Below, piece by piece: positions 275 to 50,460 of a stretch of 64,000 nt of DNA. Each line of letters begins with the position of its first letter. The stretch's first letter is position 1. A model generated the notes under the pieces. It ran no database searches. It was not told the origin of the DNA and saw only the letters and a program-made list of their open reading frames with translations. A program made the translations under genes and the position numbers. This DNA is from Octopus sinensis (Eukaryota), in the NCBI RefSeq assembly GCF_006345805.1, contig NC_042999.1, positions 19,716,001 to 19,780,000 on the forward strand, in the 5' to 3' direction.

Positions 275-960
275 CTCGCAAGGGAAACGTTGTTGTATTG
301 CATTTGTTAAATAATTGTAAACTGTAACCCTCCCCATCTGGGAGAAGGAACTTTGTTTATTGTTTAAAAATTGAATTGTGTCCCTGTTTGGTGAAATTGA
401 CAATATTTTCACCATTTATACGGAAGAATTTTTATTGGAATGCTTTCCATAGAAGAAAGTGTAAAAATGAATTTCGCTGCAGCCGTCGGCGGGCGCCACT
501 CAATAAAATTAAAATGGAAGAAATACAAACCTATTTCGGATTGATCACCGACAAAGACGGTGAATCTAGGATAACACCACCAAACGAAATACAAAATTAA
601 ATTAAAGAAAAGACTATTGTCTATAAAGTATACAATGTAGAGAAAACAAGATTTGAACACCTGCAGGAAAGCACCATCGAAAAGTGTCTTGGTGCGACTA
701 TGAAAGATTAAAGTATCTAACCAGAGGCAGTAAATTCCCCACAATAGAAGCAAGGTTCGAGTCAACGGAGCGTGCAAGGGAGTGCTCGACTCGAACCTTG
801 CAAAGTGGAAGTATTCTATTTTTACCTTTATATCTAGGACGTAGGACGTCCCGGACAAAAATTAAAATTTCCCCCCCAGAAGTCGAGATAGGCTGGATTG
901 TAGCCACACTTCTATACAAGAGGAAGGACAAGATACAATTGATCGAAATTGCAAGAGACG
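275..960 (+). pseudogene. Degenerate 5'UTR plus N-terminal ORF1 fragment of a Tx1-group retrotransposon paralogous to the element at 10020 (copy 1)
   Basis: Translates across frameshifts to NFAAAVGG...ESRITPP...IVYKVYNV...IEKC...TIEARFES...ILFLPLYLGRRT, colinear with ORF1 at 10288 (SFSDAVGG...ETRLVPP...VTYRVYNI...VEKC...TVEAHFET...IILLPLYLGCRT). Confidence 0.85.
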
Positions 961-1099
961 GGCCTACAATTCCAGTCTGTTATATATTTTGAGTATTGTT
1001 ATAACTAACGATATCAAGATATAACTTTGTATTTTGTATTTTATGTATAGATGTATATATAAAGATGTACGTAGAATATGTACACATATATACATAAAT

Positions 1100-1137
1100 T
1101 AGCACAGTGACACAGCAACGACGGGTCAAAATGCTAG
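1100..1137 (+). mobile_element. Helitron-type 3' terminus (hairpin plus CTAG) closing the ORF1-fragment segment
   Basis: agcacagtgacacagcaacgacgggtcaaaatgCTAG|t matches the 3' end of the Helitron at 26304-26704 (agcactgtgacctagcgttgccgggtcatactgCTAG|t). Confidence 0.7.
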
Positions 1138-1157
1138 TTGGTCTATATATGTGATTT

Positions 1158-1466
1158 GAGGGCGCAATGGCCCAGTGGTTAGGGCAGCAGACTCGCGGTT
1201 GTAGGATCACAGGTTCGATTCCAAGACCTGGCGCTGTGAATGTTAATTGAGTGAAAACTCCACGAGGCTCTACGACGCTCCGGCAGGGGTTTGTGGCGAT
1301 CCCTGCTGTAATCTTTCGCCAAAACTTTCTCTCTATATATCTCTGTTTTGTTGGCCTGCTCGATTAGCCTGCGAGGTGGCGTCATTTGAAGGCTAAAAGA
1401 ATGCAAAGTGCATTGTGACCAGCGATGAATAGCAAAATCAGATAGCCTGGTCTGTCACGGTGATCA
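1158..1466 (+). mobile_element. tRNA-derived SINE (octopus OR-like head) in U2 spacer
   Basis: Head gagggcgcaatggcccagtggttagggcagc with A/B-box-like motifs; orthologous insertions at 7302, 9287 and 17167. Confidence 0.85.
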
Positions 1467-1489
1467 CAGTGATATATGATTTGAAAATA

Positions 1490-1695
1490 AGATGCACTAA
1501 TCGAGGATTGAACGATCTGCTCAGAGGTCAGTCAGATTCATTCACCGTGACCTGCTACCCACCAGCCAGACACTAGCCAACACTGCTGATAAGTGATTAG
1601 CCGCGCCCCCTATCATGGTGACGTCACTTGTCTGAGACGTTTACTTTACGCAATGGTAAGAACATATATTACCATTCAACATACAATATCTATAT
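1490..1695 (+). promoter_or_regulatory. Orphan U2 upstream module (GC-rich box plus GTGACGTCAC) with no U2 downstream
   Basis: Near-identical to the sequence upstream of U2 at 8013 and 10009 up to base ~1695, then unrelated; TGACGTCA at 1619-1626. Confidence 0.75.
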
Positions 1696-2151
1696 TAAAT
1701 TAATATCCAATTTTTTCACCCGTATTTTGACTTTAATTATAAAATAACATGTTCTCAAACCGGCAGTAAATTACTTGTGCAGTATTTATATCCGAGAAAT
1801 TAGCGCGCCTTAACGAGGGCATTTGAATGTAACTGTGAATATAATCGGCCGATCTGTTAGCCTCAATCCAACCTCGTGTTGATAGCTTCCGTGCAGTTCG
1901 ACAAATTTTATTTTTGACGTACTCTACTGATGAATCGAAGATATTTAAGTAAGAAAAATAACAATTTATTAACGATGAAACAATTGCATAGAGTTAATCG
2001 ATATTTTCGTTATTTTTCATCTGTCCTGCTCGCTTACATTCTTGGTGTGTTAAATTATTCCTTGAGAACAATTCTTTGGTGGTAGATTCCCTTTGCGGAT
2101 CTATAACTAGCGTTAGAGCGTCCACATAGTGGATTCTCTCTCATAGTTTTC

Positions 2152-2200
<49 letters not shown>

Positions 2201-2215
2201 ACCATATATATATAT

Positions 2216-2470
2216 GGCATATGCAAAAAATTATTGTATACAGTGATCAAGTGCACTACAACTAAAAGAAAGCCATCAGGTGTACTGTTGGAGGATTTCA
2301 GGAAGGTTTGAAGAATTTGGTGTCTCTAAGGCTAACGACTGATGCTTCAACAATTCTGAGCGTGAAAAAATGTTTCCGAAAGTCATGGGTGATGCGTTGC
2401 TTTTTGATTTTGTCAGCATGTCCACGAGTGATGTTTTGTTTTATGATTTTGTGAGCCTGTCCACGAGTGT
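2216..2470 (-). mobile_element. 3' end of a CR1/L2-group LINE next to a (TA)n tract
   Basis: Minus strand reads KIKKQRITHDFRKHFFTLRIVEA...VVSLRDTKFF, the typical CR1-group C-terminal motif R..FF..RVV..WN.LP. Confidence 0.6.
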
Positions 2471-2922
2471 TTAACATATGGAGTTTAAAATGATGCCCAA
2501 ATTTGTTGGAATGTGGTGGGTGTTCTTGTTTTTATAACTATCCAGAAGGATAGACATTTCGTTGAGAACCATACAATTAGTTGGTGGTCTTCTTATTTTA
2601 ATACTAGCTGTTGGGAAATAGAAGATGTAAGAAAGGTCAAGTGGGGAAGACATTATTTCGGCTTCGCTAAAGCAATCTGGCAAATGTAAAACTTCTGTCA
2701 AAGAAAAACTCTTGTTTTACCATTGAACCCTATCAAAAGCCATACCCTTGAAATTTATGACCATAAGCCCTACTATTTACTTGTTTAGACAGAGTGAAGA
2801 AGGAAGCCCCTATTCAGTCTTTTCACTTACTAGAAATAGCAGCTAACTCCCCACTAACTCTACGAAACGAAACTCCAACGTCTTAAAATAAACGAATGAT
2901 AAGTGTACGTCAGACAATGTTC

Positions 2923-3043
<121 letters not shown>

Positions 3044-3417
3044 ATGGGATAGTCTTGCCTGGCACACCTCCTCAATGACAGCTGAAATGTTAATAACAAC
3101 CCCTCAATACAACACCGGAAGTGAATGAGACCGAAACTAATATCTCTTGGTTTGAAGTAAACTTCTCCCTTTACAACGAACCGACCAGTATGTGATCGTT
3201 CGATTTGCTAGAAGTAGCAACCAAACCGAAGCATTCGAAGTTGACGAAGAAAATGTCAGTTGCTTAAATATATATTTGCTTTTGATCCATATACATACTT
3301 TGAATATAATGCACCGGTCGAGGGTGCGATGCTCTGGTCACAGGTCAGTCAGATTCATGCTCCGTGACCTGCTACCCACCAGCCAGTCACTAGCCAACAC
3401 TGCTGATATGTGATTAG

Positions 3418-3690: not shown

Positions 3691-3880
3691 ATCGCTTCTC
3701 GGCCTTTTGGCTAAGATCAAAGTGTAGTATCTGTTCTTATCAGCTTAATATCTGATACGGTCCCTATTTGGGGCCATCGATATTAAACTGATTTTTAGAA
3801 CGAGGCGAAGTGTTAGGGGCTTGCTCCGCCTTTGCCACGGGTTGTCCTGGTATTGCAGTGCTTCCAGGATTCAGCCCGCT
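3691..3880 (+). ncRNA. RNU2: U2 spliceosomal snRNA (copy a, apparently intact)
   Basis: ATCGCTTCTCGGCCTTTTGGCTAAGATCAAAGTGTAGTATCTGTTC 5' end, branch-point recognition GTAGTA, stems IIa/IIb, Sm-like ATTTTTAG, stem III, stem-loop IV CCTGGTATTGCAGTGCTTCCAGG. Confidence 0.97.
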
Positions 3881-4400
3881 CACACCCGGGAGATACAAAT
3901 TAAAAATAAAATCAGATGTTTTGTTACAGTCCTCTTTTTGTTTCATCATCTCAGCGGGTTTTCTGTTAGTTGTCGTTGCTAAATACCTTCCTCACCATCA
4001 GCAAGCGCTTCACGTTCAATCCCGACTCAACCCCACGGTTTTTGTCCTCTTTGCTTCCTCATTTCAAATCCCGTCATCGCTTACACACCAACCCCTACCA
4101 GGCTCAGTGCCTTCAGAGGAGGCCCATTTTTTCTTTCAAGTCTCCCCTTTAAGTATATTTTCCTTCTCTCTCCTTCACACCAGTCTCAGGTGCCAAGCAT
4201 AGTCACACGGAAACTGCATTTCCACTTCACTACAACAAAGTATAACAACAGTAAAAACAATGTGGATGCACAAAAGAAGTGACATTCCCTATCCATCAAC
4301 CTACTAGAAATAGCAGCTAACAGACAGGATCAATTGGTAGGAAGTCCAGTATCTACCGCCAATAGTACTTACTAGTATAGTCTTTGAAAGAAAACAGCAG

Positions 4401-5130
4401 GGATCTTTTCCTTTTGAACGGCAGTTTTCAACACAATTTCCAGTTAACTAAAAACTTTTAAACTTCGTATACTGGTAGAATGTGTCAAAATAAAACATTT
4501 TTTTCTTTTGGCTTTCTTGAGAAGATTGTAATTTGTAAGTTTAACGTAGTTTAATTTTTCGAAGATGGCCTCTATTTAACTAAAATCATTTGCTGCGTCT
4601 AAAACTGAGACAACATCTTGTCATGTTATGTTTACGTTCGGAAAGCGTGTGTGTAAAATTTATAGAATTATTTTGTTTGTCAATTGTTTAAATTATTTTC
4701 CATTGCTTTCGTTTTAGCCTTTGGTTTTTTTTTTTCTTAAGCAATGGAAAATAGTTTAAACAATACACGTATATCTCAAAAGAAAATGAATAATTTTAGA
4801 CACACGCCTAACAATTAAATCAATTTAACAATTAAGAAGAAAAAAAACGAAAGGCTAAAATTTAGGGTTTGCGTTAGTGTAGGGTTAGGATTAGATCAGT
4901 GGCAGGATGTCTCAGTTTTAGACGCAGCAAAGGATTTTAGCTCAATAGAGGCCATCGATTGGTTAAAATACGAAAAATTAAACTACGTTAAACTTACAAA
5001 TTACAATTTTCTCAAGAGAGCGAAAAGAAAAAATGTTTTATTTTGACACATTCTACCAGTATACGAAGTTTAAAAGTGTTTAGTTAACTAGAAATTGTGT
5101 TAAAAACTGGCGTTCAAAAGGAAAATATCC
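4401..5130. mobile_element. Non-autonomous DNA transposon (MITE) with about 200-bp TIRs and 8-bp TSD, Merlin-like
   Basis: Starts GGATCTTTTCCTTTTGAACG, ends CGTTCAAAAGGAAAATATCC; AACAGCAG at 4393-4400 and 5131-5138; second truncated copy at 50975. Confidence 0.8.
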
Positions 5131-5740
5131 AACAGCAGATGCGATTGTCACGGGTGGGAGGTCTTTAAATCACAATAAACGCCAGTATGTATTTCCGTCT
5201 CCAAGGCCAGATTAATACCCATACAGCCCCTAATCACTTCAAAAAGATTTTGGTGCCGCCAGATGTATATAAATGTAAACAATAATATATGATAAATTAA
5301 ATTTTTATTTTGCAAAATCAAATAAAACTAACAGTAAGATGGAAAATAATCCCTTCCACTGAAGGAAAAAGGCCTTGAAAATTTGTGGAGGGGACTAGTC
5401 GAATACGTCGACCTCAGCTTCCACTGGTACTAAATATATTGCTAGAAATAGCAGCTAACTCACCACCAACAAATCGACCAAATGATTGCAACATTATTTG
5501 CTCAATGAGAACTGAAATGTTAACTTCACCACAGTCCAGTTTCACTCCCAACGTTCACCTGACGCTATTGTAACGAATATTTTACGTTTAATATGGTAAA
5601 CAGTGGTACGAAACCGAGTAACAGTTGGTTTGAAGCAACGAACCAATCGCTACCTAGTCGCCCGACTTACAAGGTACAGCAATCAAAACAAAACATTCGG
5701 CATTAACGAAGATGTGAGTCGCCTTAATATTTGTTATTGG

Positions 5741-7281
5741 TCTATATATATAAAACTGAGAATGAGTGTCTGTCTATCTGTCTGACTGTATTTCCCTAAA
5801 ACCTGAGAACTACACAACCAATTTCATTCGAATTTTACACATAGCATACTTAGGGTCCGTGGAGTGTCATCGGCAAAAAAAGTTTTACCTTTTTGCCTAG
5901 GGAAAGCCAACAGCAATATCAAATCTTCTCCACTACGATTCCCTAAAACTTGAGAACAACACAACCAATTTCATTCAAATTTTACACATGCCTTACTTAG
6001 GGTCCATGTAGTTTAATGGGCAAAAAATGTTCAACTTCTTGCCTTGGGCGAGCCAATAGCAATATCATATCTTCTCCACTATTTCAGTATTATGTGTTAA
6101 AGGTGAAACAAAAATATTTCGCTATTTTATGTCAGAAACTTTCACTATAAATTTAGAGATAATAATAATAATTGAATTATATGTAGTAAATAATAATCAA
6201 AATCAAACTAAAGTACAATATAATCGTAACCTAAGATAAGTGAAAGTAGCAATTGGTATAAAATTGCATCAACGACTTGAACTTGAATAAGTGGTTTCAC
6301 ATGAATGGGAATAAATTAAACTAAATCAATCGCGTACTGCTTTTTGATTCACCGTAATGTGTGTTGTTATTATTATTACTGTTTAACTATTGTTATCACG
6401 TTTGTCGGTTCCTCGTAAAGAAAACGTTGTTGTGTTGCATTTGTTAAATAATTGTAAACTCTAACCGTCCCCCTCTGGGAGAAGGAGCTTTGGTTATTGT
6501 TTGAAAATTGAATTGTGTACCTTTTTGGGGAAATTGACAATATTTTCACCGTTTATACGGAAGCATTTTTGTTAGAATGCCTTCGATAGAAGAAAGTCCA
6601 AAAAGGAATTTCGCTGCAGCCGTCGACGGGCGCGAACTCATTAAAATTTAAATAAATACAAACCTATTTCGGATTGATCACCGATTAAACGGTGAATCTA
6701 GGATAACACCACCAAACGAAATAAAAAATTTAATTATAGAAAAATCTATGGTCAATAAAGTATACAATGTAGAACTAAACAGATTTGAACACCTGGAGGA
6801 AAGCACCATCGAAAAGTGTCTTAGTGCGACTATGAAAGTTATCAAGTATCTAACCAGAGGCGGTAAGTTCGCCACAATAGAAGCAAGGTTCGAGTCAACG
6901 GAACGTGCAAGGGAGTACTTGACTCGAACCTTGCAAAGAGGAAGTATTTTATTTTTACCTTTATATCTCGGACGTAGGACGTCCCGAACAAAAATTATAA
7001 ATATCCCCCCAGAAGTAGAGGTAGTCTAGATTGTAGCCACACTTCTATACAAGAGGTGGGAAAGTAACAATTGATCGAAATTGCAAGAGACGTAACTACA
7101 ATTCGAGTCTGTTATATATTTTGAGTATTTTTATCACTAGCGATATCAATATATAACTTTCTATGTTGTACTATATGTGTAGATGTATATATATGGATGT
7201 ACAAGTAATATGTACGCATATATATACACATATATACATGCACTATCACTATGATTCGGCAGCGATGGGTCATAATAATAG
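5741..7281 (+). mobile_element. Non-autonomous Helitron carrying a Tx1-type ORF1 fragment
   Basis: 5' TCTATATATATAAAA like the other Helitrons in the window, internal ~150-bp tandem duplication (about 5790-6080), cargo 6411-7090, 3' hairpin plus ATAG|t; the empty site is visible at 17139-17160. Confidence 0.7.
6411..7090 (+). pseudogene. Tx1-group 5'UTR/ORF1 fragment (copy 2)
   Basis: ORF 6748-7029 VYNVELNRFEHLEESTIEKC...TIEARFESTERARE...LPLYLGRRT, homologous to ORF1 at 10288. Confidence 0.85.
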
Positions 7282-7301
7282 TTGGTCTATATATGTGATT
7301 T

Positions 7302-7610
7302 GAGGGTGCAATGGCCCAGTGGTTAGGGCAGCGGACTTGCGGTTGTAGGATTACAGATTCGATTCCCAGACCTGGTGTTGTGAGTGTTTATTGAGCGAAA
7401 ACACCACGAGGCACCACGAGGCTCCGGCAGGAGTTGGTGGGGATCCCTGCTGTACTCTATCGACACAACTTTCTCTCTCTCTCATTTTGTTAGGCCTGCT
7501 CGCTTAGCCTGCGGGGTGGCGTCATTTGAAGGCTAAAAGAATGCAAAGCGCATTGTGACCAGCGATGAATAGCAACATCTGATAGCCTGGTCGTTCACGG
7601 TGATCACAGT
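7302..7610 (+). mobile_element. tRNA-derived SINE in U2 spacer
   Basis: Same family and same position as the copy at 1158. Confidence 0.85.
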
Positions 7611-8012
7611 GATATATGATATGAAAATAAGATGCACTAATCGAGGATTGAACGCTCTGGTCAGAAGTCAGTCAGATTCATTCACCGTGACCTGCTACCC
7701 ACCAGCCAGTCACTAGCCAACACTGCTGATAAGTGATTAGCCGCGCCCCCTATCATGGTGACGTCACTTGTCTGAGTCGTTTACTTTACGCAATGGTAAG
7801 AACATATATTACCATTCAACATACAATATCTATATAAACTTACAAATAATTAATTTAAAGATATTAAAAATATTTTAAACTATAACATTTAAGAATTGAA
7901 TGTGTTTACAATATAGCAGGTAATTAAATGTGATTGGAATAAATAATTTACATATCAGTTGATGTAACTTTAACTTGTGTAAAGATAGTCTGTGGCAAAA
8001 CAGCTAAAATCT

Positions 8013-8191
8013 ATCGCTTCTCGGCCTTTTGGCTAAGATCAAAGTGTAGTATCTGTTCTTATCTGATACGGTCCCTATTTGTGGCCATCGATATTAAACT
8101 GATTTTTAGAACGAGGCAAAGTGTTAGGGGCTTGCTCCGCCTTTGCCACGGGTTGTCCTGGTATTGCAGTGCTTCCAGGATTCAGCCCACA
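8013..8191 (+). pseudogene. RNU2: U2 snRNA copy b with an 11-nt deletion in stem-loop IIa
   Basis: TTCTTATC|TGATACG versus TTCTTATCAGCTTAATATCTGATACG in the other copies; rest of gene and promoter intact. Confidence 0.92.
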
Positions 8192-8809
8192 CCCAACTGG
8201 GAGATACAAATTAAAAATGAAATCAGATATATTGTTACAACCACCATTTTTTTTCGTCATTTCAGCGGGTTTTCCGTTAGTTGTCGTTGCTAAAGAACTT
8301 CCTCGCTGTCAGCAAGCGGTTCCCTTTCGATCCCGACTAAACCCCACGGTTTTTGTTCTCTCTGCTTCCTCATTTCAAATCCCGTCATCGCTTTCTCACC
8401 AACCCCTTCCAGGTTCAGTGCCTTTTGAGGAGATCCTTTTCCTTCTAAGCAGTCGATTCAAGTCTCCACTACTTTAAGTATACTTTTCTTTCTATATCCT
8501 TCACATCAGGGCGGACTTCTATTCTCTTTCCTGTTTCAGTCATCCGACTGCGGCCTTGTTGGTGCACAGCCACGAACATTTAGACGTATAAATCGACACC
8601 AGCACTTATTATTTGATGCCTAGTACGTAAGCTATCGTGTATAGCTGAAGATACATACCCAAGGAGCCACCCAAAGAACTGATCTCGGACCCATGTTTTT
8701 GAGAAGCAAGCTCCTTACGAAACGGCAATTTCTACCTATTTTTTTTTAAATTGCAAAGCAGCTGTTCCTCAAAATAGATCTTATGTAACACATCTGCTTC
8801 TAAAGTTGG

Positions 8810-9266
8810 TGCGACAATGAAATATATCAAGTATCTAACCAGAGGCGGTAATGCACCACAATAGAAGCAAGGTTCTTGTCAACGGAGCATGCAAGGGAGT
8901 ACTCGACTCGAACCTTCCAAAGTGGAAATATTTTATTTTTACCTTTATATCTGGGACGTAGGACGTCCCAGACAAAAATTTAAAATGTCCCCCCAGAAGT
9001 AGAGGTAGTCTGGATTGTAGCCACACTTCTATACAAGAGGGAGGACAAGATACAATTGATCGAAATTGCAAGAGATGGGCCTACATTTCAAGATTGTTAT
9101 ATATTTTGAGTATTGTTATCACTAGCGATATCAAGATATAACTTTGTATTTTGTATTTTATGTGTAGGTGTATATATATAGATGTACATGTAATATATAC
9201 ACATATATATACACATATATACATGAACTAGCACTATGACCCGGCAACGACGAGTTATAATGCTAG
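8810..9266 (+). mobile_element. 3' half of the ORF1-carrying Helitron (copy 3), fused to the U2b 3' flank
   Basis: Begins mid-ORF1 fragment (ggtgcgacaatgaaa), ends acccggcaacgacgagttataatgCTAG|t. Confidence 0.7.
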
Positions 9267-9286
9267 TTGGTCTATATATGTGATTT

Positions 9287-9603
9287 GAGGGCGCAATGGC
9301 CCAGTGGTTAGGGCAGCGGACTCGCGGTTGCAGGATCGTAGGTTCGATTCCAAAACCTAGCGTTCTGAGTGTTTATTGAGCGAAAACACCAAAAGCTCCT
9401 CGACGGTCCGGCAGGGGGTGGTGGCAATCCCTGCTGTACCCTTACAACACAACTTTCTCTCTCTCTCTCTCTCTCTCTCTCTTTTGTTGGCCTGCTCGCT
9501 TAGCCTGCGGGGTGGTGTCATTTGAAGGCCAAAAGAATGCAAAGCGCATTGTGACCGGCGATGAATAGCAACATCTGATAGCCTAGTCGGTCACGGTGAT
9601 CAC
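9287..9603 (+). mobile_element. tRNA-derived SINE in U2 spacer
   Basis: Same family and position as 1158 and 7302. Confidence 0.85.
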
Positions 9604-9736
9604 AGTGATATATGATATGAAAATAAGATGCACTAATCGAGGGTGGGACGCTCTGGTCAGAAGTCAGTCAGATTCATTAACCGTGACCTGCTACCCACCA
9701 GCCAGTCACTAGCCAACACTGCTGATAAGTGATTAG

Positions 9737-10008
9737 CCGCGCCCCCTATCATGGTGACGTCACTTGTCTGAGTCGTTTACTTTACGCAATGGTAAGAACA
9801 TATATTACCATTCAACATACAATATCTATATAAACTTACAAATAATTAATTTAAAGATATTAGAAATATTTTAAACTATAAAATTTTAGAATTGAATGTG
9901 TTTACAATATAGCAGGTAATTAAATGTGATTGGAATAAATAATTTACATATCAGTGGATGTAACTTTAACTTGTGTAAAGATAGTCTGTGTCAAAGCAGC
10001 TAAAATTT
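9737..10008 (+). promoter_or_regulatory. U2 promoter now directly upstream of the retrotransposon
   Basis: TGACGTCA at 9755-9762 (-254), PSE candidate gtaactttaacttgtgtaaagatagtctgtg; nearly identical to the U2b promoter. Confidence 0.8.
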
Positions 10009-10019
10009 ATCGCTTCTCG
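10009..10019 (+). other. U2 nucleotides 1-11 (ATCGCTTCTCG), left copy of the target-site duplication
   Basis: Follows the U2 promoter at the normal start position, then switches abruptly to element sequence TCCATCGCTACC. Confidence 0.9.
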
Positions 10020-10287
10020 TCCATCGCTACCTGGTGTTTTTTTAATTTTTCCTCGGTTTATACCAATATTTTTCTGTTGCTGCAAATCGTTGTGTGAGTT
10101 CGTTTCCGTTTGTCTACTCTGTCGTGTTACAAGTAATATCATTGTTGAACTGTTTTTGACCCAGTAATTTTCGCCCTTCGGGGTAGAAAATTTCTGTGGT
10201 TTTTTTTTTTTTGTGTGTGTGAATTCTTAACCTGTATAGGTTATTTTTGGAAAAAAAAAAAATTCTCTTGTCATTTGTGACAAGTTT

Positions 10288-11629
10288 GTGTTGTCTAATA
10301 TGGAATTAGACTTAAGTTCAAAAAAAGACTTTCCCGAAATGGGAGAAAGTATAACAACTGTTAAACAAAAGGAAACACAGACAAAACCCAGTTTTTCAGA
10401 CGCCGTAGGTGGCGAAGTCGAAGAAATGGAGGTATCAATGGAAAGATTATTCAAGTTTAGATCGCTGGTGCAAAAAAGTGGCGAAGAAACACGATTGGTA
10501 CCGCCCCCCGAAACTATACAAGCAATAAAGGAAAAAATGGTCACCTACAGGGTGTACAATATCAAGGAAAAACGAATGACCGACGTGAAAAACGAAATGG
10601 TCGAAAAGTGTATGGCTCCAATATGGAGTAAAGTTAGTCATGTCAACCGAGGTGCAAGAAGCGCTACAGTGGAGGCGCATTTTGAAACGGCGGAAGTAGC
10701 AAGGCAAATTTCGACACAAACGTTGAAAAACGAGAGTATAATACTGCTACCCTTATATTTAGGATGCAGAACCGCAAAAGTGACCCTAGAAGATATACCA
10801 ACGGGCTACGACGTGATGTGGGCGGCAACAGCGGTCATTTTTGATGTTGAATCAAAATTGACAATTTTAAGTATGAAGAGAAAAATTGCAAAACACTGGA
10901 GAGGCCAGCAGCTGGAGATGATAATCCAGGCGGAAAATGCGACGTTGGAAAGCCTACCAGACAGAGTCTTCGTGGGGGAGGGGCACTCCATACGAGTTTC
11001 GGTGGAAGGACGCAGGCCCAGATGTTTTAAGTGCGGGCAAAGGGCCACGTTCGCTCCGTTTGCACAAAAAAAATAATGCGGGCAACGCCCCCCCACAAAA
11101 CGCTGTGAAGAACGCAGAAAGCAGCAAAGTGGAGAAAAAAGTAACGGCTGGCGAAAACAAGGAGGAAAAATAAACAGGTCGAACTCCAAAAAGGAGGAAG
11201 ACAAGAACGAAATGCAAAATGAGAAAGGAAAGGATGAGGAAAATAATGCAACAAAAACAAATAAACAAGAAGACATGGAATTTACGAACGTGTCCAACAA
11301 AAGGAAAAAATCCATCACCCCTGACTCCCCACCCGTATCAAAAAAAAAAAAACAACGCAGACGAACAAATTAAAAATATTCTCCAATCCCACCCCGGCGG
11401 TACTACACTTATAGGCCAGCACTTTAACAAACCCCACCCCCCAACTGTAAAAGGGTTTAAACCCAACGAAAAAATTATTGCATACACCACAAAGAACGTG
11501 AGAGTAGAAACATGGGTGAAAGCAAGTACGCTGATCAGGTGCTACAAAGCGACCGAGAAGGAAGCGGAGTGGGGGGGAGACAGGCAGAAAGAATCTGTCA
11601 GGCTCCCTCTCGCAACCGTGAGTAAATAA
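10288..11629 (+). pseudogene. ORF1 (gag-like, CCHC zinc knuckle), frameshifted
   Basis: Restoring one G near 11043 gives CFKCGQRGHVRSVC (CX2CX4HX4C), followed by a Lys/Glu-rich region; further shifts at A-runs; stop at 11627-11629. Confidence 0.85.
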
Positions 11630-11644
11630 TTTTCTTTTTTCTCG

Positions 11645-14600
11645 ATGATTAAGTTAGGTTGTATAAATGTGCGTGAATGGGATCGAAATGGAAACAGGCT
11701 TGTTTTCGTGACGACCTCATTTCACATAGAATCGAAGTAGCTATTGTTACCGAGTCCAAGATGAAGGGACCCCAAGCGTTTTCACCACTTCTCAATGGTT
11801 ACGAGAAATTTATTTCTCCTAGCCGAGGGGGAGGTGCAGGCGTGGCAGTTCTTTTCAGGAAGAACTTGGACTTACAGGTAAGTACTGTCTTTTTGGACCC
11901 AGAAGGTAGGCTGGTTGTCCTAGATGTGACGCACGTGAGTAAGCAGTCCTTCAGGTTGGTGGCTGTCTACGCTCCTAACGGACGTGGGCAGACCGGTTTT
12001 TATCGGGAACTGGAGCACTTTCTAGTGACGTCCAAAACGGTAGTCTTGGTAGGGGATTTCAACACCATTCTCGATGCGCGGGTGGATGGTGTAGGCTCGA
12101 GCGATAGGAAGGGGAATCCTGGCCTCAAGGCTCTACTAGCGAGCTTTAATCTAGTAGACCGTTTTCGACTGGATGAGCCGAACGTTCCACAGTGGACGTG
12201 GAGTAATAACGACGGCTCACTCAGATCGTACATAGATAGAGTATTTGTTAAGGAACGAGATAGGAATAGTGTTAGCTGTCAACAATTCTCTGTTGTGCCT
12301 TACACGGATCACAAACTTGTAACGTGTGAGGTACATGTAGATAAATGCCATAGACAAGGTGCCGGGTACTGGAAGATGAACAAGTCTATTTTGACCTGTG
12401 AAGCTTTCCGTACCCAGATTAAGGAATTAGTACAGAGGGCATTATGTGGCACCATCATTAATAATAGATGGTGGCTCGCCCTCAAAAGAGCCATCCGTTT
12501 GGAGTCCATTAGATTTAGCAAGCAGCTAAGTTTAGATAGGACTAGAATAGAGGGCGAATTAGTTAAGAACTTAGACGAGGATATGGAATCTGGCTGTGCA
12601 TCCGGAGTGTTGGCAGCGAGAGCGGTATTGTACCGTCACCTCAACGCCAAGCACGAGGGGTGTAGAGTCAGAGCTAAGTTACGTGCAGGAAAACGAGAAG
12701 GTATTAACGTTGCCGGATGGGCCCGTCGTGAGGAGAGTCAGAAGGGCAAAAAGTCCTGTATTATGTCCTTATCTGACGAGCAGGACCGCAAGATCTATGG
12801 ACAGGAGGAGATGCAGAAGGTACTTCACCAGCATTTCACACGGCTGTTTGGGGGCGGTGGCCCGCTCGAGCGTGGGGAGACCTTAAAGGACTTCCTAGCT
12901 GGTGGGCCTCGGCTCTCGGCGGGTGAGGCGGAGTGCTGTGAAGGATCGATCTCTCCCGCAGAGGTAAGAGGGGTTATGGCCGAGTGCGCCGGGGAAAAGT
13001 CACCGGGATTGGATGGTCTACCCTATTAATTTTATTGTTGTATGCCGGACTTGTTCGGGGGCATACTGGCAAGCGTCTATGCAAACTGGCAACAGAATGG
13101 GAGGATTCCCAGCTCTGTGAGTCGGGGAGTTGTGACGCTGGTCCAGAAAGACCCGAGCAAGGGGGACAGTATTAGTAATTACAGGCCCATAACTCTACTT
13201 AATGTAGAGTTTAAGATTTTGGCCAAGGTGTTAGCAAAAAGGTTGACGGCTGTCGTGAAGAAACTTGTCGGGAAGGCACAGACATGTGCAATCCCAGGCA
13301 GGTCGATCCAGGATAATCTTCACCTTCTCCGCTACACTATAGATAGGGTCGGGAAATTAGACGGCAAAGGAGGGGCATTGGTCCATTTAGACCAAAGTAA
13401 AGCGTTTGATAGGGTGGACCATCGGTACTTGGCGGCGGTTCTCGAAGCGGCTGGGCTGGGCCCTGGCTTCTGCGGGTGGATCTCAGCTATGTACAGCGGC
13501 ATCAAGTCCACAGTCCAGATAAACGGTTACCTAACGGAGCCGTTTTCGATCAAGCGTTCAGTTCGTCAAGGGTGCCCCTTGTCCCCGCTCCTGTATGTTT
13601 TGGCTCTTGAGCCATTGCTGCGGAAGCTGGAGAAGTTGGGAGGCAACCCTAATGAAATCGGATGCGGTAAGTCTGTTTCTGCCTATGCGGATGACGTCAC
13701 CCTCATCGTGTCCAACGGAACACAGCTACCTCGGGTAGTAGGTGCTCTCCATAGATACGAAGCGGTAGCAGGGGCAAAAGTTAACAGGGACAAGTCCATC
13801 GGTTTGCGCCTCGGCACCTGGAGGAACAAGCAGATACCGTCCAGTGTTGTTGGACACTGGACGGATGGTCCTGTTAAATTGCTCGGAGTCTGGTTTGGTC
13901 CAGACTCCCAGACGGAGAAGAATTGGAGCGAGGTAACGAGCAAGGTGGATGCCATAGTACGGAAGTGGTCCGGAAGGCATCTTTCCTTGAAAGGGAGGGC
14001 GGAGGTGGCACAGATGTTTATAGCCTCTGTCGTCACCTACCGCCTGACCGTCGTGCCTTGCCCCGATTCGTGGTTAAACAAGTTGGAACGACTTCTTTTC
14101 CGCTTTTTGTGGAAAGGAGGAAAGCCACTTGTGAGACGCTCCGTGTGTTGCCAGGAACCGCTAAAGGGTGGACTGGGGATGCCTTGGCTAATGATGCGCA
14201 AGCATGCGTTGAGGCTGAGACACCTCTGGTGTTACCTGGAGGATGATAAGGTGTGGAGTTCGCTGGCAGAGGAATTCTTCCCGCGACCGGCCTCTATGGA
14301 GGGATTTACACCCGGTCTCATTAAAGGACGTAAACTGACTTCATGGCAGAAGGAGTGCCGACAGGCACTCTGGCTGATCCACAAGATGGGTAAGGCCGGC
14401 AGCGGGAATACCACCTCGGTGTTCTATAAAGGGCTGGTAGGAGGAAAAAATGACGACGTCCTAGGAAGGGCTCTGGGGTTCGATGAGGATCAACTCTCCA
14501 ACCTGTTTAAGAAGACTTTCAGGCCGGGGTATTTGGATAATTACCAAAAATCCCTGACCTGGCAGTGCTATAGGAATGCATTACCTGTTCGCGAGAAGTT

Positions 14601-15033
14601 ATCCAGGCACGGAATGTCAGTGCCACCGACGTGTCCAAGATGTGGGTTGGACGATGAAACCGTTCAACACGCTTTTGTACAATGTCGGGAGCTGTCAGGC
14701 TTGATAAGTTACGTTGAACACGTGTTGTCGCATCTGGGACGAGTACAGCTGTCGGCTGCATCTATGATTAAGATGATACCGCCAACTGGACTCTCAAAGG
14801 AAGGTAAGGCTTGTTTTTACTGTACGGTGGCAGTATTGAAAGAGTGTGTATGGAGAACTAGAGTGGAAGGTCTAGTGAAAGGGTCCTTTAACTCTGGCCC
14901 CGGTTTGTTAAAATACTTCGGATATCATCTGAAGAGCAAGATGGGGTTGGAGAAGAGGAGCCTGCCACAGAAAGAGTATATGGAACGTTGGAAGGATGTG
15001 ATGAGAAAGGTGGGTGAGAGTAACCCAGCTTAA
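11645..15033 (+). pseudogene. ORF2: APE endonuclease, reverse transcriptase and C-terminal zinc finger; one frameshift and one nonsense codon
   Basis: MIKLGCINVR(G)MGSKW start with one base missing near 11675; TESK, VYAP, GDFN, SYIDR, YTDH APE motifs; PGLDGLPY-TAA(13027)-FY; YRPITLLN, DQSKAFDRV, QGCPLSPLLY, YADD; CPRC...ETVQHAFVQC. Confidence 0.95.
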
Positions 15034-15388
15034 TCATCGAGGAAAGGAAAAATCAGCTGCTGGGATTTATAGGCTGCCGGGTTCAAAATTGAAACTGGTA
15101 CCTCCCATTACCTTTCACTGTACATAACTGTTTAAAATAAAGAATTAATAATAAAAAAAAAGAAATCAAAAGAAAACATACGCACTAAAAGTTCTCGTGA
15201 CAAAGGCAAAAGTAAGCCAAGGTTTCGTTTCAAGGCAAAGTAAGCCAAGTTTTCGTTCAAGTGACATAAAATTTTAATTTTGTAATTTTTAAAATTTCAT
15301 TCGAACTCGCATAGCATTTTTGTAATTGTTTTGTCCTGTAATGTATCCATTCTATGTTAGATCTATTGATCATAATAAAGAAAATTTT

Positions 15389-15578
15389 ATCGCTTCTCGG
15401 CCTTTTGGCTAAGATCAAAGTGTAGTATCTGTTCTTATCAGCTTAATATCTGATACGGTCCCTATTTGGGGCCATCGATATTAAACTGATTTTTAGAACG
15501 AGGCAAAGTGTTAGGGGCTTGCTCCATCTTTGCCACGGGTTGTCCTGGTATCGCAGTGCTTCCAGGATTCAACCCACT
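15389..15578 (+). pseudogene. RNU2: U2 snRNA copy c: complete sequence but cut off from its promoter
   Basis: Full U2 directly after the element's 3' end; carries private substitutions including loop IV ATTGCAG>ATCGCAG; normal 3' flank follows. Confidence 0.92.
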
Positions 15579-17166
15579 CCCACCCGGGAGATACAAATTA
15601 AAAATAAAAACAGATATGTTGTTACAGCCCCCTTTTTTTCTTTCATCATCTCAGCGGGTTTTCCGTTAGTTGTCGTTGCTAAAGACCTTCCTCGCCGTCA
15701 GCAAGCGGTTCGCGTTCGATCCCGACTCAACCCCATAGGTTTTGTCTTCTTTGCTGCCTCGATTCAAATCCCGTCATCGCTATTACACCACCCCTACCAG
15801 GTTCAGCGGATTTTGAGAGGAACCTTTTCTTTCTAAGCAGTCGATTCAAATCTCCACTACTTTAAGTATACTTTTCTTTCTATATCCTTCAAACCAGGGC
15901 GGAATCTATTCTCTCTCATGTTTCAGTCATTCAACTGCGGCCATGTTGGGGCACAGCCACGAACATTTAGACGAATGAATCGACACCAGCACTTATTTTT
16001 TTAAGCCTAGTACGTAAACTATCGTGTATAGCTGATGATACTAGCCCAAGTTGCTACGCAAAGAACTGATCTCGGACCCATGTTTTTGAGAAGCAAGATC
16101 CTTACTAAACGGTCATTTCTACCCATTTTTTTAAATTTTAAAGCTGCTCCTCAAAATAGATCTTATGTAACACATCTGCTTCTAAAGTTTTATACCTAAG
16201 AATTCTAGGAAGTTTAACGTGAATCCTTTTGTGCCGTACACCAATAACCACTCCGTTATGTCCCCCCTCCCTCCCTCACCTTTTCCTTAATACCCTAAGC
16301 TCGGGCTTATTTTGTTTAATGTGTAGCGTACCCTTAGTGAAATCCTTTCTCTCTCTCTCTCTCTCTGACATATATAACATAAATACGGCCGATAACAGCT
16401 AACCTTCGGCCGCTTGGGCCTGTTGTGTCAACTACACCGATTGGTTGGGATTGGCGCAGTTTGTCTCTTGCTCAATTACGCCCGAATACGCAACCCAACC
16501 AATCACAATCTTCAGATAAGATCCCGTGACACAGTCGTCTAAATTCTTTGCTTGAGCCTACAATTTGCTATAATACACAGTGATTCATCGAATCGAGCTT
16601 CTTTGGTTCTAGTCCTTCTAAGGACTAACCCCTGACCTCAGAGCACCCACTGACAGACAGCCAGTTCCAGCGATTCAGCCAGTTCCAGCGACAGACAACA
16701 CCACTAGCAGAATTTCCGGACCTTCAACTATGTCGCCTTCATCTTAACGACGCCAACAGCAACTTCGCCTTGATTTAACTTCCCACTGTTTGTCAATACT
16801 TCACCATGGTTAACAGTAAGCGCAACCGGCGAGTACCTTCTGTACCAAGTGACCCGGCACGGCATAGCATCCACAACCGCTTACACGACATGTGTTCAAC
16901 AGGCTCTGTCTTGTGCCCTCAGCTCCTTAGTTACAGGATTTCTACAGTTGTGTACTTCACTAGGAACTGGTATTTATCTTCAACTTGAGTCTGAACATTC
17001 AACCACCGTCCTATTGTAAAGACTTTCTACGCTCTGTATTTTATTACACACGCATACACCCTTGTTTGTACGACTTAAAAGGTATCGCAATCAAAACAAA
17101 ACATTCGACATTAACGAAGATGTGAGTCGCTTAAATATTTGTTATTGGTCTATATATATGTGATTT

Positions 17167-17450
17167 GAGGGCGCAATGGCCCAGTTGTTAGGGCTGCGGA
17201 CTCGCGGTTGTAGGATCGTAGGTTCGATTCTCAGACCTGGCGTTGTGAGTGTTTATTGAGCGAAAACACCAAAATATCCACGAGCCTCCGGCTGTACTCT
17301 TTCGCCACAACTTTCTCTCTCTCTCTCTTTTGTTGGCCTGCTCGTTTAGCCGGCGGTGTGGCGTCATTTGAAAGCTAAAAGAATGCAAAGCGCAATGTGA
17401 CCAGCGATGAAGAGCAACATCTGATAGCCTGGTCGGTCACGGTGATCACA
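17167..17450 (+). mobile_element. tRNA-derived SINE in U2 spacer
   Basis: Same position as the other spacer copies, bounded by atatatg(tg)attt-like duplicated sequence. Confidence 0.85.
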
Positions 17451-17864: not shown

Positions 17865-18054
17865 ATCGCTTCTCGGCCTTTTGGCTAAGATCAAAGTGTA
17901 GTATCTGTTCTTATCAGCTTAATATCTGATACGGTCCCTATTTGGGGCCATCGATATTAAACTGATTTTTAGAAGGAGGTGAAGTGTTAGGGGCTTGCTC
18001 CGCCTTTGCCATGGGTTGTCCTGGTATTGCAGTGCTTCCAGGATTCAGCCCATC
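17865..18054 (+). ncRNA. RNU2: U2 spliceosomal snRNA (copy d, apparently intact)
   Basis: Complete U2 sequence with upstream module (TGACGTCA at 17609-17616) and conserved 3' flank. Confidence 0.96.
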
Positions 18055-18663
18055 TCCCACCTGGGAGATACAAATAACAAATAATGTCAGATATATTCTT
18101 ACAGGCCCCTTCTTTCTTTCATCATCTCAGCGGGTTTTCCGTTAGTTATCGTTGCGGAAGGCCATCCTCGCCGTCAGCAAGCGGTTCCCGTTCGATCCCG
18201 ACTGAACCTTCGTCCACTTCCAATTTCGTACGCATTGCTTTCTCATTTGAAATCCTGTCATCGCTTTCACACCACCCCCTATCTGGTTCAGTGCCTTTAG
18301 AGGAAACCCTTTTTTTCTTGCAAGAGGTCGGTTCAAGTCCCCACTTTAAGTATACTTTTCTCTTTATATCCTTCACACCAGTCTCAGGTGCCCAGCAAAG
18401 TTACGGTGAAACTGCATTTCCACTCCACTACAACAAAGGCCAGACTGATACCTATACAGCCCCTAATCTCTTCAAAAAGATTTTGGTGCCGCCAGATATA
18501 TATAATTCAAAATGTAAACAATAATAAGCGATAAGTAAAATTTTCATTTTGCAAAATCAAATAAAACAAACAGTAAGATGGAAAATAATCCCTTCCACTA
18601 AAGGAAAAAGGCCTTGAAATGTTGGGGGAGGGGGCCAGTCGATCAGATCGACGCCAGTATGCA

Positions 18664-18910
18664 ACTGGTACTAAGTTTGTCGGCGAGCTGGCAGAATTGT
18701 TAGCGCGCGGGATGAAATGCTTAGCATTATTTCGTCTGCCGTTACGTTCTGAGTTCAAATTCCTCCGAGGTCGACTTTGCCTTTCATCCTTTCGGGATCG
18801 ATAAATTAAGTACCAGTTACTCACTGGGGTCGATGTAATCGACTTAATACCTATGTCTGTCCTTGTTTGTTCCCTCTGTGTTTAGCCCCTTGTGGGTAAT
18901 AAAGAAATAG
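18664..18910 (+). mobile_element. Octopus SINE family with head ggcgagctggcagaa
   Basis: gttcaaattcc B-box-like motif and gactttgcctttcatcctttcggggtcgat core; further copies near 27580, 29630, 39040 and 61715-62128 (minus). Confidence 0.8.
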
Positions 18911-19167: not shown

Positions 19168-21109
19168 ACAGGGTCATAGCCCAACTGATTAGGGAGAGAG
19201 TCAACTTGGACGAGATGCAGTTTGGCTTCGTGCCAGGGAAAAGCACCATCGATGCCATATTTCTGGTGAGACAGCTGCAGGACAAATACCTAGCCAAAGT
19301 TACACCTCTGTACCTGGCTTTCGTTGTCATGGAGAAAGCCTTTGACAGGGTCCCCCGATCCCTTATCTGGTGGTCAATGAGGAAACTAGGGATAGATGAA
19401 TGGTTAGTGAGAGCTGTGCGAACCATATACAGGGACGCTGTTAGTAATGTGAGGGTTGGCAACGTGTACAGTGAAGAATCCCGGGTAAAGGTTGGGGTCC
19501 ACCAAGGTTCAGTCCTCAGTCCCTTCCTATTTATCATAATCCTCCAGGCAATAACAGAGGAATTCAAGACAGGATGCCCCTGGGTGCTCCTCTATGCTGA
19601 TGACCTTGCTCTAATTGCTGAGTCACTATCAGAACTGGAGGAGAAGTTTCAGGTGTGGAAGCAAGGATTAGAATCGAAGGGCCTAGCTAAAACCAAAGTC
19701 GTAATAAGTAGGAAGGTAGACAAGTCACAAACGCCTTCAGGTAGATGGCCTTGCTCGATCTGTAGGAAAGATGCACCAAGTGTAAGCTATGGACACATAA
19801 GAGGTGCAGCAACGTCAAGGGAAGGCTAACTAGGAAGATAGTTTTTGTATGTGGTAAATGCTCAGGAGCAATAAACACTGAAAATGCGCAGAGAGCAACT
19901 TCCGCCACATTCCAAGGAGAAAAACTAGAAATAGTTGATAGCTTCCTTTACCTAGGTGACCAAGTCAGTAGCAGGGGCGGGTGTGTTGAAAGTGTAACTG
20001 CTAGAGTAAGAATAGCTTGGGCAAAGTTCAGAGAGCTCTTACCTCTGCTAGAGTAAGAATAGCTTGGGCAAAGTTCAGAGAGATCCTACCTCTGCTAGGG
20101 ACAAAAGACCTCTCGCTCAGAGTAAAAGGCAGACTGTATGATGCATGTGTACGAACAGCCATGCTACATGGCAGTGAAACATGGGCCGTGATTGCTGAGG
20201 ATATGCGTAAGCTCACAAGAAATGAAGCCAGTATGCTCCGATGGATGTGTAATGTCAGTGTTCATACTCGACAGAGTGTAAGTACCTTGAAAGAGAAGTT
20301 GGACCTAAGAAGCATCATTTGCGGTGTGCAAGAGACGTTTGCGCTTGTATGGCCATGTGGCAAGAATAGATGAAGATAGTTGTGTGAAAAAGTGCCACAC
20401 CTTAGCTGTTGAGGGAACCTGTGGAAGAGGCAGACCCAGAAAAACCTGGGATGAGGTGGTGAAGCACAACCTTCGAACTTTAGGTCTCACCGAGGAAATG
20501 ACTAGAGACCGAAACCTTTGGAAGTATGCTGTACGTGAGAAGACCCGGCAGGACAAGTGAGACCATAACCCATGGCTTCAGTCCACTTATACATACCTTT
20601 CCTTCTTCGGACACAAAACTCTACTTGTGAAGACCTGTTGAGGCAAGTGAAAATCAAAAATCAAAATCAAAATCGAAATCGATCAACATCAATGGAATTT
20701 GTAGTTGTGATACCATTGCCGGTGGCACGTAAGAGAACAATCCGATCGTGGCCGTAGCCAGCGCCGACCTGACTGACCCCCGTGCCGGTGGCACGTAAAA
20801 AAACACCATCCGATCGTGGCCGTTGCCAGCCTCGCCTGGCCTCCGTGCCGGTGGCATGTAAAAAGTACCATCCGAACGTGGCCGTTTGCCAGCCTCGTCT
20901 TGCACCTGTGTCGGTGGCACGCAAAAAGCACCCACTACACTCACGGAGTGGTTGGCGTTAGGAAAGGCATCCAGCAGTAGAAACACTGCCAGATCAGACT
21001 GGGCCTGGTGCAGCCTTCTCGCTTCTCAGACCCCAGTTGAACTATCCAACCTATGCCAGCATGGAAAGCGGACGTTAAACGATGATGTTGATGATGATGA
21101 TGATGATGA
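19168..21109 (+). mobile_element. 5'-truncated, degenerate RTE-clade LINE with minisatellite-like 3'UTR and (GAT)n tail
   Basis: QFGFVPGKSTIDAIF, EKAFDRVPR, GVHQGSVLSP, LLYADDL; C-terminal RGRPRKTW; 3' end ggacgttaaacgatgatg; 3' fragments also near 22110, 27120 and 30930 (minus). Confidence 0.92.
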
Positions 21110-23269: not shown

Positions 23270-23443
23270 AAATTAGCAAGTGTAGATGTGGTTGCTTACC
23301 AACCACATGGTTCTGGGTTCAGTCCCACTGCGTGGCATCTTGGGCAAGTGTCTTCTACTATAGCCTCGGTCCGACCAAAGTCTTGTGAGTGGATTTGGTA
23401 GACAGAAACTGAAAGAAGCCAATGATATACACATATATATATG

Positions 23444-23474
<31 letters not shown>

Positions 23475-23680
23475 GTACGTGTGTCTGTGTTTGTACCCCC
23501 AACATCACTTGACAACCGATGCTGGTGTGTTTGCGTCCCCGTAACTTAGCAGTTTGGCAAAAGATCCAATAGAATAAGTGCTAGGCTTACAAAGAATTAG
23601 TCCTGGGTTTGATTTGCTTGACTAAAGGCGATGCTCCAGCATGACCACAGTCAAATGACTGAAACAAGTAAAAGAGTAGA
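23270..23680 (+). mobile_element. Dominant octopus tRNA-derived SINE (head ggcgtaggagtggctgtgtgg, internal microsatellite, tail gtaaaaga repeats)
   Basis: Representative copy; others near 32880, 35490(-), 39470, 40380(-), 40750(-), 46600(-), 52990, 57370(-), 60295, 60470(-), 61310(-) and 63495. Confidence 0.85.
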
Positions 23681-41278: not shown

Positions 41279-41665
41279 TGGAGGCGCAATGGCCCAGTGG
41301 TTAGGGCAGCGGACTCGCGGTCGTAGGATCGCGGTTTTGATTCCCAGACCGGGCGTTGTGAGTGTTTATTGAGCGAAAACACCTAAAAAAGCTCCACGTG
41401 GCTCCGGCAGGGGATGGTGGTGATCCCTGCTGTACTCTTTCACCACAACTTTCTCTCACTCTTACTTCCTGTTTCTGTTGTACCTGTATTTCAAGGGGCC
41501 GGCCGTGTCACTCTCTGTGTCACGCTGAATATCCCTGAGAACTACGTTATGGGTGCACGTGTCTGTGGAGTGCTCAGCCACTTACACGTTAATTTCACGA
41601 GCAGGCTGTTCCGTTGATTCGGATCAACCGGAACCCTCATCGTCGTAACCGACGGAGTGCTTCCT
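41279..41665 (+). mobile_element. Full-length OR-like tRNA-derived SINE
   Basis: Same head as the U2 spacer SINEs but a different 3' tail; other copies near 36150, 42035, 52420(-) (TSD CATGCGATAAGAT at 52388-52400 and 52798-52810), 55533 and 62610(-). Confidence 0.85.

Positions 41666-49671: not shown

Positions 49672-49672
<1 letters not shown>
47866..49672 (-). mobile_element. Penelope-like element: RT C-terminus, GIY-YIG endonuclease and terminal region with hammerhead-like motif
   Basis: YGRYIDDII...FHPALHFT; SFTCTSSNIIYCVSCSLCNSLYIGQTGRRLADR.AEH; HHR-like motif at 47966-48003. Confidence 0.9.
48300..48590. repeat. Polypurine (GA/G-rich) low-complexity tract inside the Penelope element
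   Basis: Almost pure A/G on the plus strand with many G-runs. Confidence 0.9.
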
Positions 49673-49712
<40 letters not shown>

Positions 49713-50460
49713 TATAAAACTGTAGTTGTGTGAGTGTCTGTCCCCTTCGATTTAGATTCCTAACTACTCCCACATTTTGCGATGCAGTTTAACCAAATTC
49801 GGGTATCTTATAGTCCTGATTCATATCGAGCCCGTCTGAGTATTAGCGCGCGTCTACAATGAGTCTACGATTTTAAAAATAATTTAACATCATTTTTTAT
49901 TCCATTTTAATGCATAATTTTTCGTGTGTCGATGGCGGCGGAGTTGGCGGCCATGGTCACACCTGCACCTGTTTGCTTCTCCCCCTTCTTCCCTCCCTCG
50001 TGAAGCTGTGGGGAAGGGAGTGTAAGGAAATCAACGTCGTAAAGCGTTGTCAAGGAGACCAGCGTTCTTTTAGAACAACGACTTCATGGCTTGAAGACAC
50101 TAAAACAGAAATGGCTAAGAAAGCCCGAATTGGCATCTATAAGGGAAGTAACTCTCTAAAATTGCTTATATAGTTATTTCCCTTACAAACCCGAGCAACG
50201 CTGGGCGATACTGCTAGTATATATATAAAACTGTCAAGAATATTGAAAAAGTAATAATTACATATTGTATAATTTTCTTCAATTCTACATAAGGCTGAAT
50301 TTTTTAGCTCTAACTTATATTTTTAAAATTTTGATGAAATTTAATAAATATAAAATTACATAGGTACAATTTGCCCAAGGTACCACTCGGTGGGACTGAA
50401 CCCGGAATCATAGGGTTGGGAAGCAAACTTCCTACCACACAGTCACTCCTGCGCCTATCT

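Follow-up and report, generated by a model that had tools for sequence, protein, structure and literature searches.

Two groups of long interspersed nuclear elements (LINEs), Keno and Utopia, are known to insert in U2 small nuclear RNA (snRNA) genes. Both have a 3′ flank that starts at U2 nucleotide (nt) 39 (site 38/39), and as of 2015 they were the only U2-targeting retrotransposons that had been reported (PMC4640811). The present analysis concerns a stretch of 64,000 nucleotides from Octopus sinensis (assembly GCF_006345805.1, contig NC_042999.1, positions 19,716,001 to 19,780,000 of the forward strand; hereafter the window). It identified a full-length LINE of the L1/Tx1 group integrated in sense orientation in one unit of a U2 gene array. 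A first-pass annotation had proposed that this LINE represents a new U2-targeting family whose site differs from that of Keno and Utopia. The difference of site was verified, since the 3′ flank of the element starts at about position −8 and holds U2 nt 1–194, compared to nt 39 for the two known groups (PMC4640811). In the literature that we searched, we found neither a LINE inserted at the U2 start site nor any U2-targeting element from a cephalopod. Overall, this LINE insertion is fairly young and well defined, and its position is unusual and suggestive; its interpretation as a new U2-targeting family, seen here in one copy, is plausible.

Insertion of a LINE at the start of a U2 gene

The insertion is defined by the following features:

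9622..10008, + strand: U2 upstream/promoter block on the 5′ side of the element, which aligns at ~90% with its counterparts in front of the U2 genes at 3691, 8013 and 17865
10002..10019, + strand: left copy of the target-site duplication (AAAATTTATCGCTTCTCG), with U2 nt 1–11 at 10009–10019
10020..15380, + strand: full-length retrotransposon of the non-LTR type (lacking long terminal repeats), 5,361 bp, single copy in the window
15381..15399, + strand: right copy of the target-site duplication (AAAATTTTATCGCTTCTCG), delimited by junction reading and unit alignment
15389–15582, + strand: complete U2 gene of 194 nt (Rfam, 183.6 bits, model positions 1–192), cut off from its promoter by the insertion

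At the left junction, the sequence is ...cagctAAAATTTATCGCTTCTCG|tccatcgctacc. The U2 promoter and U2 nt 1–11 (+1 at 10009, +11 at 10019) precede the element, the transcript start sequence at +1 being AUCGCUUCUCG. The right junction reads ...tgatcataATAAAG|AAAATTTTATCGCTTCTCGGCC..., where the terminal AATAAAG of the element is followed by the duplicated site, which runs into a complete U2 gene; this gene has the highest Rfam score of the four U2 genes in the window. The two copies of the duplication (10002–10019 and 15381–15399) are identical over 14 nt (TTTATCGCTTCTCG), or match over 18/19 nt if one T indel is allowed, and span about −8 to +11 of U2. The length of 5,361 bp between the two copies, both flanks and the extent of the duplication are thus as the first-pass annotation had described them.

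Two ambiguities affect the exact boundaries. First, the relatives of the element that are described below terminate in AATAAAGAAATC, so that some of the four A's at 15381–15384 possibly belong to the element itself; therefore, the true length of the duplication is 14–19 nt. Second, the TCC at 10020–10022 could correspond to U2 nt 12–14 (GCC) with one mismatch, which would shift the top-strand nick to +14.

Besides the U2 gene that follows the element, Rfam searches detected three uninterrupted U2 genes, all four being carried by the + strand:

3691–3884, + strand: U2 gene, empty site
8013–8195, + strand: U2 gene with an empty site, 11 nt deleted internally
17865–18058, + strand: U2 gene, empty site

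The U2 units form a loose tandem array, with a divergence of ~10–12% between spacers and a variable unit length. About 1.2 kb located 5′ of the left junction can be aligned with the other units over their spacer and promoter, and the alignment of both flanks with the three uninterrupted units allowed us to rebuild the empty site CAGCTAAAATTTTATCGCTTCTCGGCC. The locus therefore results from a real insertion with duplication of its target and not from a chance resemblance. Since only one unit carries the element and the units are ~10–12% diverged, the insertion is younger than the duplications of the array units.

The spacers of the array also harbor decayed fragments related to the first open reading frame (ORF1) of the element, at 505–956, 6578–7030 and 8858–9073 (+ strand), ~1 kb upstream of the U2 starts; the second of them includes an ORF of 93 aa (6748–7029). 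This old remnant is 32–35% identical to the ORF1 of the element, compared to 29% for the ORF1 of a relative from Argonauta hians. An older related LINE has become incorporated in the U2 repeat unit and been copied with it, which shows that the lineage had visited the array before. We considered whether the remnant could derive from an earlier insertion at the same U2 site and rejected this, as neither a U2 promoter nor a U2 5′ fragment is found upstream of it. The 5′ untranslated region (UTR) of the remnant has no detectable similarity to that of the element.

Structure, classification and relatives of the element

The element itself is organized as follows:

10020–10299, + strand: 5′ UTR, 280 nt
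10300..11076, + strand: ORF1 (258 aa as assembled), with an RNA recognition motif (RRM)-like region and the CCHC knuckle CFKCGQ.GHVRSVC (~11023–11066)
11645..15033, + strand: ORF2, from the ATG at 11645 (MIKLGCINVR), encoding an apurinic/apyrimidinic-type endonuclease (APE, 11719–12312), a reverse transcriptase (RT, 13165–13890) and a zf-RVT domain (14548–14688)
15034..15380, + strand: 3′ UTR, with a 28-nt tandem duplication at 15203–15261 and the terminal AATAAAG (15374–15380)

The capacity to encode an APE and an RT, announced by the first-pass annotation together with the sense orientation, was recovered like the latter, Pfam detecting Exo_endo_phos (3.4e-12), RVT_1 (2.5e-32) and zf-RVT (4.1e-10). 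The APE motifs INVR, TESK, GDFN, SYIDRV and TDHK and the RT motif YADD are all present in ORF2, and its start agrees with that of the Argonauta ORF2 (MALFSVGGINVRGL). No Pfam match was obtained for ORF1, and the protein database search returned no homologue of it. An ORF1 with an RRM-like domain and a CCHC knuckle is a mark of the Tx1 clade. In the present copy, this knuckle is broken by a 1-nt frameshift near 11040 and can only be read across it; a relative from a marine metagenome (L004) carries in its ORF1 an RRM and an intact CCHC (CWQCKERGHIARVC).

ORF2 is affected by a 1-nt frameshift at ~11672 and by one TAA nonsense codon (13027–13029), and is otherwise unbroken to 15033. The total damage is light and amounts to two 1-nt frameshifts and one nonsense codon in ~4.2 kb of coding sequence. 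Judging from these lesions, the copy appears dead as assembled but young, with a decay of roughly 2%, estimated by assuming that ~4% of substitutions create stop codons. Each frameshift falls within or next to a short homopolymer run, and both could be errors of the assembly.

The 3′ end of the element lacks a poly(A) tail, apart from four A's at most, and no special structure of the 3′ UTR was found, its folding being no better than that of shuffled sequence (z = −0.88). The segment 15266–15300 of this UTR holds TAAAATTTTA, a 10-mer that the U2 target site also has, together with TTTTTAAAATTT, which occurs in the duplication flanking the Argonauta relative; both are probably coincidences of AT-rich sequence.

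Among solved structures (PDB), the best match of the RT is human L1 ORF2p (E = 2e-41), R2 being far behind (~1e-25), and those of the APE are L1 ORF2p and the L1 endonuclease. Since human L1 ORF2p is the best solved match of both domains, the element was placed in the L1 group. It shows three features of this group: an APE at the N-terminus of ORF2, an RT followed by a C-terminal zinc-binding domain, and a target-site duplication flanking a full-length element whose 3′ end was joined by target-primed reverse transcription. Membership of the Tx1 clade is plausible, because the L1-group LINEs of molluscs fall in Tx1 in RT-based surveys, which recover Tx1 and not L1 proper (PMC10294476). Similarly, a repeat annotation of Octopus vulgaris published in 2026 includes L1-Tx1 as its sole L1-group class, with 13 recently active L1-Tx1 families (PMC13282606). 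The same annotation lists a SINE/U class and does not mention targeting of snRNA genes (PMC13282606).

Neither self-BLAST nor tblastn detected a second copy or fragment of the element in the window, where only the older ORF1-like remnants and two distant RT remnants were found. The latter (19170–19637, + strand, and 45823–46038, − strand) are 25–33% identical to the RT of the element and probably derive from other LINE clades. A search of 5.8 billion protein clusters with the RT as query did not reveal any member of the same family, the closest matches being:

P0001: 62% identity, 3-kb contig of GCA_024449705.1
P0003 and P0004: 58% identity, JGI metagenome
P0002: 57% identity, Argonauta hians
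many further proteins: 38–49% identity, ENA metagenomes

Metagenome scans with single-protein and alignment queries returned only relatives at 25–42% identity, and scans of prokaryote genome contigs and viral contigs for the junction pattern gave no match. Rfam detected neither U2 nor any other snRNA at the nine loci of relatives (L001–L009). Among these loci, L002 (62%) and L005 (58%) lie on contigs too short for their flanks to be read, and the contigs of L003 and L004 (46–49%, marine metagenomes) carry no RNA gene.

The closest relative whose flanks can be read is the copy from Argonauta hians (L001), which is full length (~4884–10640) and whose RT and APE are 57% and 42% identical, respectively, to those of the octopus element. 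A 17-nt duplication, (T)ATTTTTAAAATTTGTA, surrounds this copy; the DNA there is simple and AT-rich, with no U2 closer than 8 kb, and the target has only the 8-mer TAAAATTT in common with the U2-start site. An alignment of its 5′ UTR with that of the octopus element was attempted and found unconvincing.

The 3′ termini of the cephalopod relatives read GGC(T/C)AATAAAGAAATC, and the shared terminus is AATAAAGAAA(TC). The 3′ UTR of the Argonauta copy (10020–10640) shows a partial tandem duplication (~10020–10390 and 10425–10640), of which the second copy alone ends in the conserved GGCTAATAAAGAAATC. In L005 (2015–2105; JGI metagenome 3300045642), the terminus AATAAAAGAAATC is followed by (ATT)n up to the end of the contig, which could be either a microsatellite target or a tail made by the element.

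More distant relatives (L006–L009 and L019–L020 from ENA ERZ21867824 and ERZ25071366; ORF2 41–43% identical) form head-to-tail tandem arrays with a period of ~6.5–6.8 kb. Some of these arrays were assembled as “circular” contigs, and no RNA gene lies between the copies. Taken together, the absence of a poly(A) tail, the simple-repeat flanks and the tandem arrays of the relatives are expected of Tx1-like elements, and none of the relatives ties the lineage to U2.

Possible targeting of the U2 start and its genomic setting

With only one copy found, a dedicated target site at the U2 start is likely at most. We regard real targeting of this start with capture of the promoter as evenly balanced between true and false. 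More specifically, and with confidence a little short of such a balance, we tentatively propose that the element is the first observed representative of a cephalopod lineage of the Tx1 group, one that would integrate specifically at the U2 transcription start (bottom-strand nick at about −8, top-strand nick at +11), hijacking the snRNA promoter and leaving a whole U2 gene downstream.

The first argument is the arrangement itself: the element is in sense orientation, with a complete promoter and start on one side and a complete U2 gene on the other. Only ~5 × 19 positions (~0.15%) in the 64-kb window would give such an arrangement, and the genome-wide chance can be estimated at ~1e-6 per random insertion if ~100 U2 genes are assumed in 2.8 Gb. 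Furthermore, the element has no long poly(A) tail, its terminus is common to its relatives, an old ORF1 remnant is found in the same array, and ORF2 carries two lesions only. The 17-nt duplication of the Argonauta relative, which is similar in length to the octopus one, suggests a fixed spacing between the two nicks. It should also be emphasized that many families of the Tx1 clade are specific for multicopy RNA genes and that being co-transcribed with the target is a recognized strategy (PMC4494074).

Another possible trace of the U2 start lies within the element:

10023..10034, + strand: putative U2-like 5′ head (ATCGCTACCTGG), element nt 4–15 compared to U2 nt 1–12, 9/12 matches (13/20 over a longer segment)

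Elsewhere in the window, sequences that agree with the U2 5′ end at 9 or more of 12 positions occur at ~2e-4 per position. The segment may be an inherited U2-derived head, such as would be left by a donor RNA that had started at the U2 start site.

The structure of the locus shows integration by target-primed reverse transcription, with staggered nicks 14–19 bp apart around U2 +1. The top strand was nicked after +11 (possibly +14), giving the 14–19-nt duplication, and the insertion has fused the entire U2 promoter and start site to the 5′ UTR of the element, with a promoter-less complete U2 copy downstream. In the proposed mechanism, a preference for the U2-start site would reside in the endonuclease, or in the ORF2 protein combined with its RNA, and the four terminal A's of the element RNA may pair with a TTTT primer. 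Inserted copies would then be transcribed from the captured U2 promoter into RNAs that begin with U2 nt 1–11, and the loss of its promoter would silence the downstream U2 copy.

Several observations weigh against this proposal, and some of them would equally be expected from a chance insertion by a dispersed LINE with a loose AT-rich preference (TTTT/A-type or TAAAATTT-like sites), the position at a gene start being then coincidental. The context of the bottom-strand nick, AAAATTTT/AG, that is TTTT/AG, recalls the TTTT/A sites that L1 loosely prefers. The Argonauta copy, which is the closest relative whose flanks can be read, is inserted in AT-rich simple DNA and not in U2, and the 58%-identical JGI relative ends beside (ATT)n. 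The element is a single copy in all the data searched (window, 5.8 billion protein clusters, metagenome, prokaryote and viral contigs), with no second U2-associated copy. Only one of the four U2 genes in the window is occupied, and the old ORF1 remnant does not mark the U2-start site, since it lies in the spacer ~1 kb upstream and is not preceded by a U2 promoter. In addition, a scan that picks striking loci enriches for such coincidences.

Two further points bear on the proposal itself. The similarity of the 5′ head to U2 was noticed post hoc and is not significant in unanchored local alignment (p ~0.12–0.19), and snRNA-type promoters are poor at producing long polyadenylated transcripts, which weakens the step of promoter capture. 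Conversely, a random sense hit on the U2 start that keeps both promoter and gene whole is very unlikely even within the window, elements of this group are often target-specific (PMC4494074), and the possible U2-like head is present. Weighing both sides, we consider a chance insertion to be a serious possibility, although on the improbable side.

A regional preference for U2 or similar tandem arrays, due to open or highly transcribed chromatin or to tolerated insertions and involving no defined sequence, is improbable. Two insertions of related ORF1 lineages, of different ages, are both located in the 18-kb U2 array, with none in the other 46 kb of the window, and more distant relatives occur in long head-to-tail arrays. 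However, two of two insertions in 28% of the window corresponds to p ~0.08, and the old remnant counts as a single event because it was spread by unit duplication. Lastly, the mis-joining of a LINE contig into the U2 array during assembly is very unlikely: although the location of both frameshifts in or beside homopolymer runs hints at long-read indel errors, the junctions are precise, the duplication is as long as expected and joining the flanks restores a normal U2 unit, which a chimeric join would not produce.

To return to the possible targeting of the U2 start, the structure, coordinates, sense orientation and distinctness of the site from that of Keno and Utopia put forward by the first-pass annotation all stand, whereas the sequence specificity of the proposed family is not established by one copy whose Argonauta relative lies outside U2.

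The array and its surroundings show several other peculiarities. The U2 gene at 8013–8195 is missing 11 nt (TATCAGCTTAA, flanked on each side by a TATC direct repeat) immediately 3′ of the branch-point-pairing region, has a lower Rfam score (153.8 bits) and is probably a pseudogene or a variant. One array unit (275–3300) has no U2 gene: its upstream block ends at 1702, ~170 bp short of the expected U2 start; 1.6 kb of unrelated DNA containing two long (TA)n tracts then separate it from the next unit, which restarts at 3291.

A repeat family of ~180 bp (e.g., 41283–41462) is also found within the U2 spacers (1161–1333, 7305–7482, 9290–9466 and 17170–17324). The remainder of the window (18000–64000) is dense in short interspersed repeats, including a ~390-bp family (e.g., 23292–23678) with more than 15 copies on both strands; a family of ~230 bp (18681–18910) has six copies in the window. 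ARAGORN did not find any tRNA-like head in the short interspersed repeats of the window. The 2-kb bin 48001–50000 is a strong composition anomaly, with a GC content of 0.50 and a GC skew of +0.50 compared to ~0.39 and ~0 elsewhere.

Comparison with known site-specific retrotransposons

Site-specific LINEs are few, and they are under development as RNA-only tools for gene insertion in safe multicopy loci. If the U2 start is a dedicated target, the octopus element would belong to a third, independently evolved lineage of U2-targeting LINEs and would be the first known case of a LINE directed to the start of an snRNA gene transcribed by RNA polymerase II (Pol II). It would thus provide both a new target and a natural test of how small changes of an L1-like endonuclease create specificity. 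Furthermore, a Pol II snRNA promoter would have been captured to drive a retrotransposon, which bears on the origin of the short interspersed nuclear elements (SINEs) headed by snRNA sequences. If the insertion occurred by chance, it would simply add another young LINE copy to a cephalopod genome rich in repeats.

Like the octopus element, Keno is a LINE of the L1/Tx1 group that encodes an APE and an RT, enters U2 genes in the sense direction and lacks a long poly(A) tail. However, the 3′ flank of Keno starts at U2 nt 39, inside the RNA, whereas the duplication from −8 to +11 in the octopus leaves the downstream U2 whole and the promoter captured. Moreover, Keno has been reported from vertebrates, lancelet and Hydra and not from molluscs (PMC4494074).

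Utopia shares the U2 target gene, and its reptile families display duplications of ~20 bp (PMC4640811). It differs by its C-terminal PD-(D/E)xK endonuclease, its single ORF and its nt 38/39 site, compared to an N-terminal APE and two ORFs in the octopus element. As the C-terminus of the latter holds zf-RVT only, the endonuclease type excludes Utopia.

The Tx1-Mar families and SINEU of crocodilians have 5′ ends with U1- or U2-derived sequence (PMC4494074), which recalls the resemblance between nt 4–15 of the octopus element and U2 nt 1–12. However, they target a Mariner transposon and not U2, and the octopus head, 12–20 nt long with 9/12 matches, is statistically weak.

R2 and R1 are also inserted in sense orientation in a multicopy RNA gene and rely on the promoter of their host gene (PMC4494074). 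Unlike the octopus element, which is placed 11 nt downstream of a Pol II snRNA start, they are located inside the transcribed 28S gene and are processed from a long RNA polymerase I transcript. Finally, Ty3 from yeast and TRE5/DRE from Dictyostelium integrate, like the octopus element, at the start of small RNA genes or a short distance upstream of it. In their case, these genes are transcribed by RNA polymerase III and are reached through contacts with transcription factors; Ty3 uses an integrase, and neither belongs to the L1/Tx1 group.

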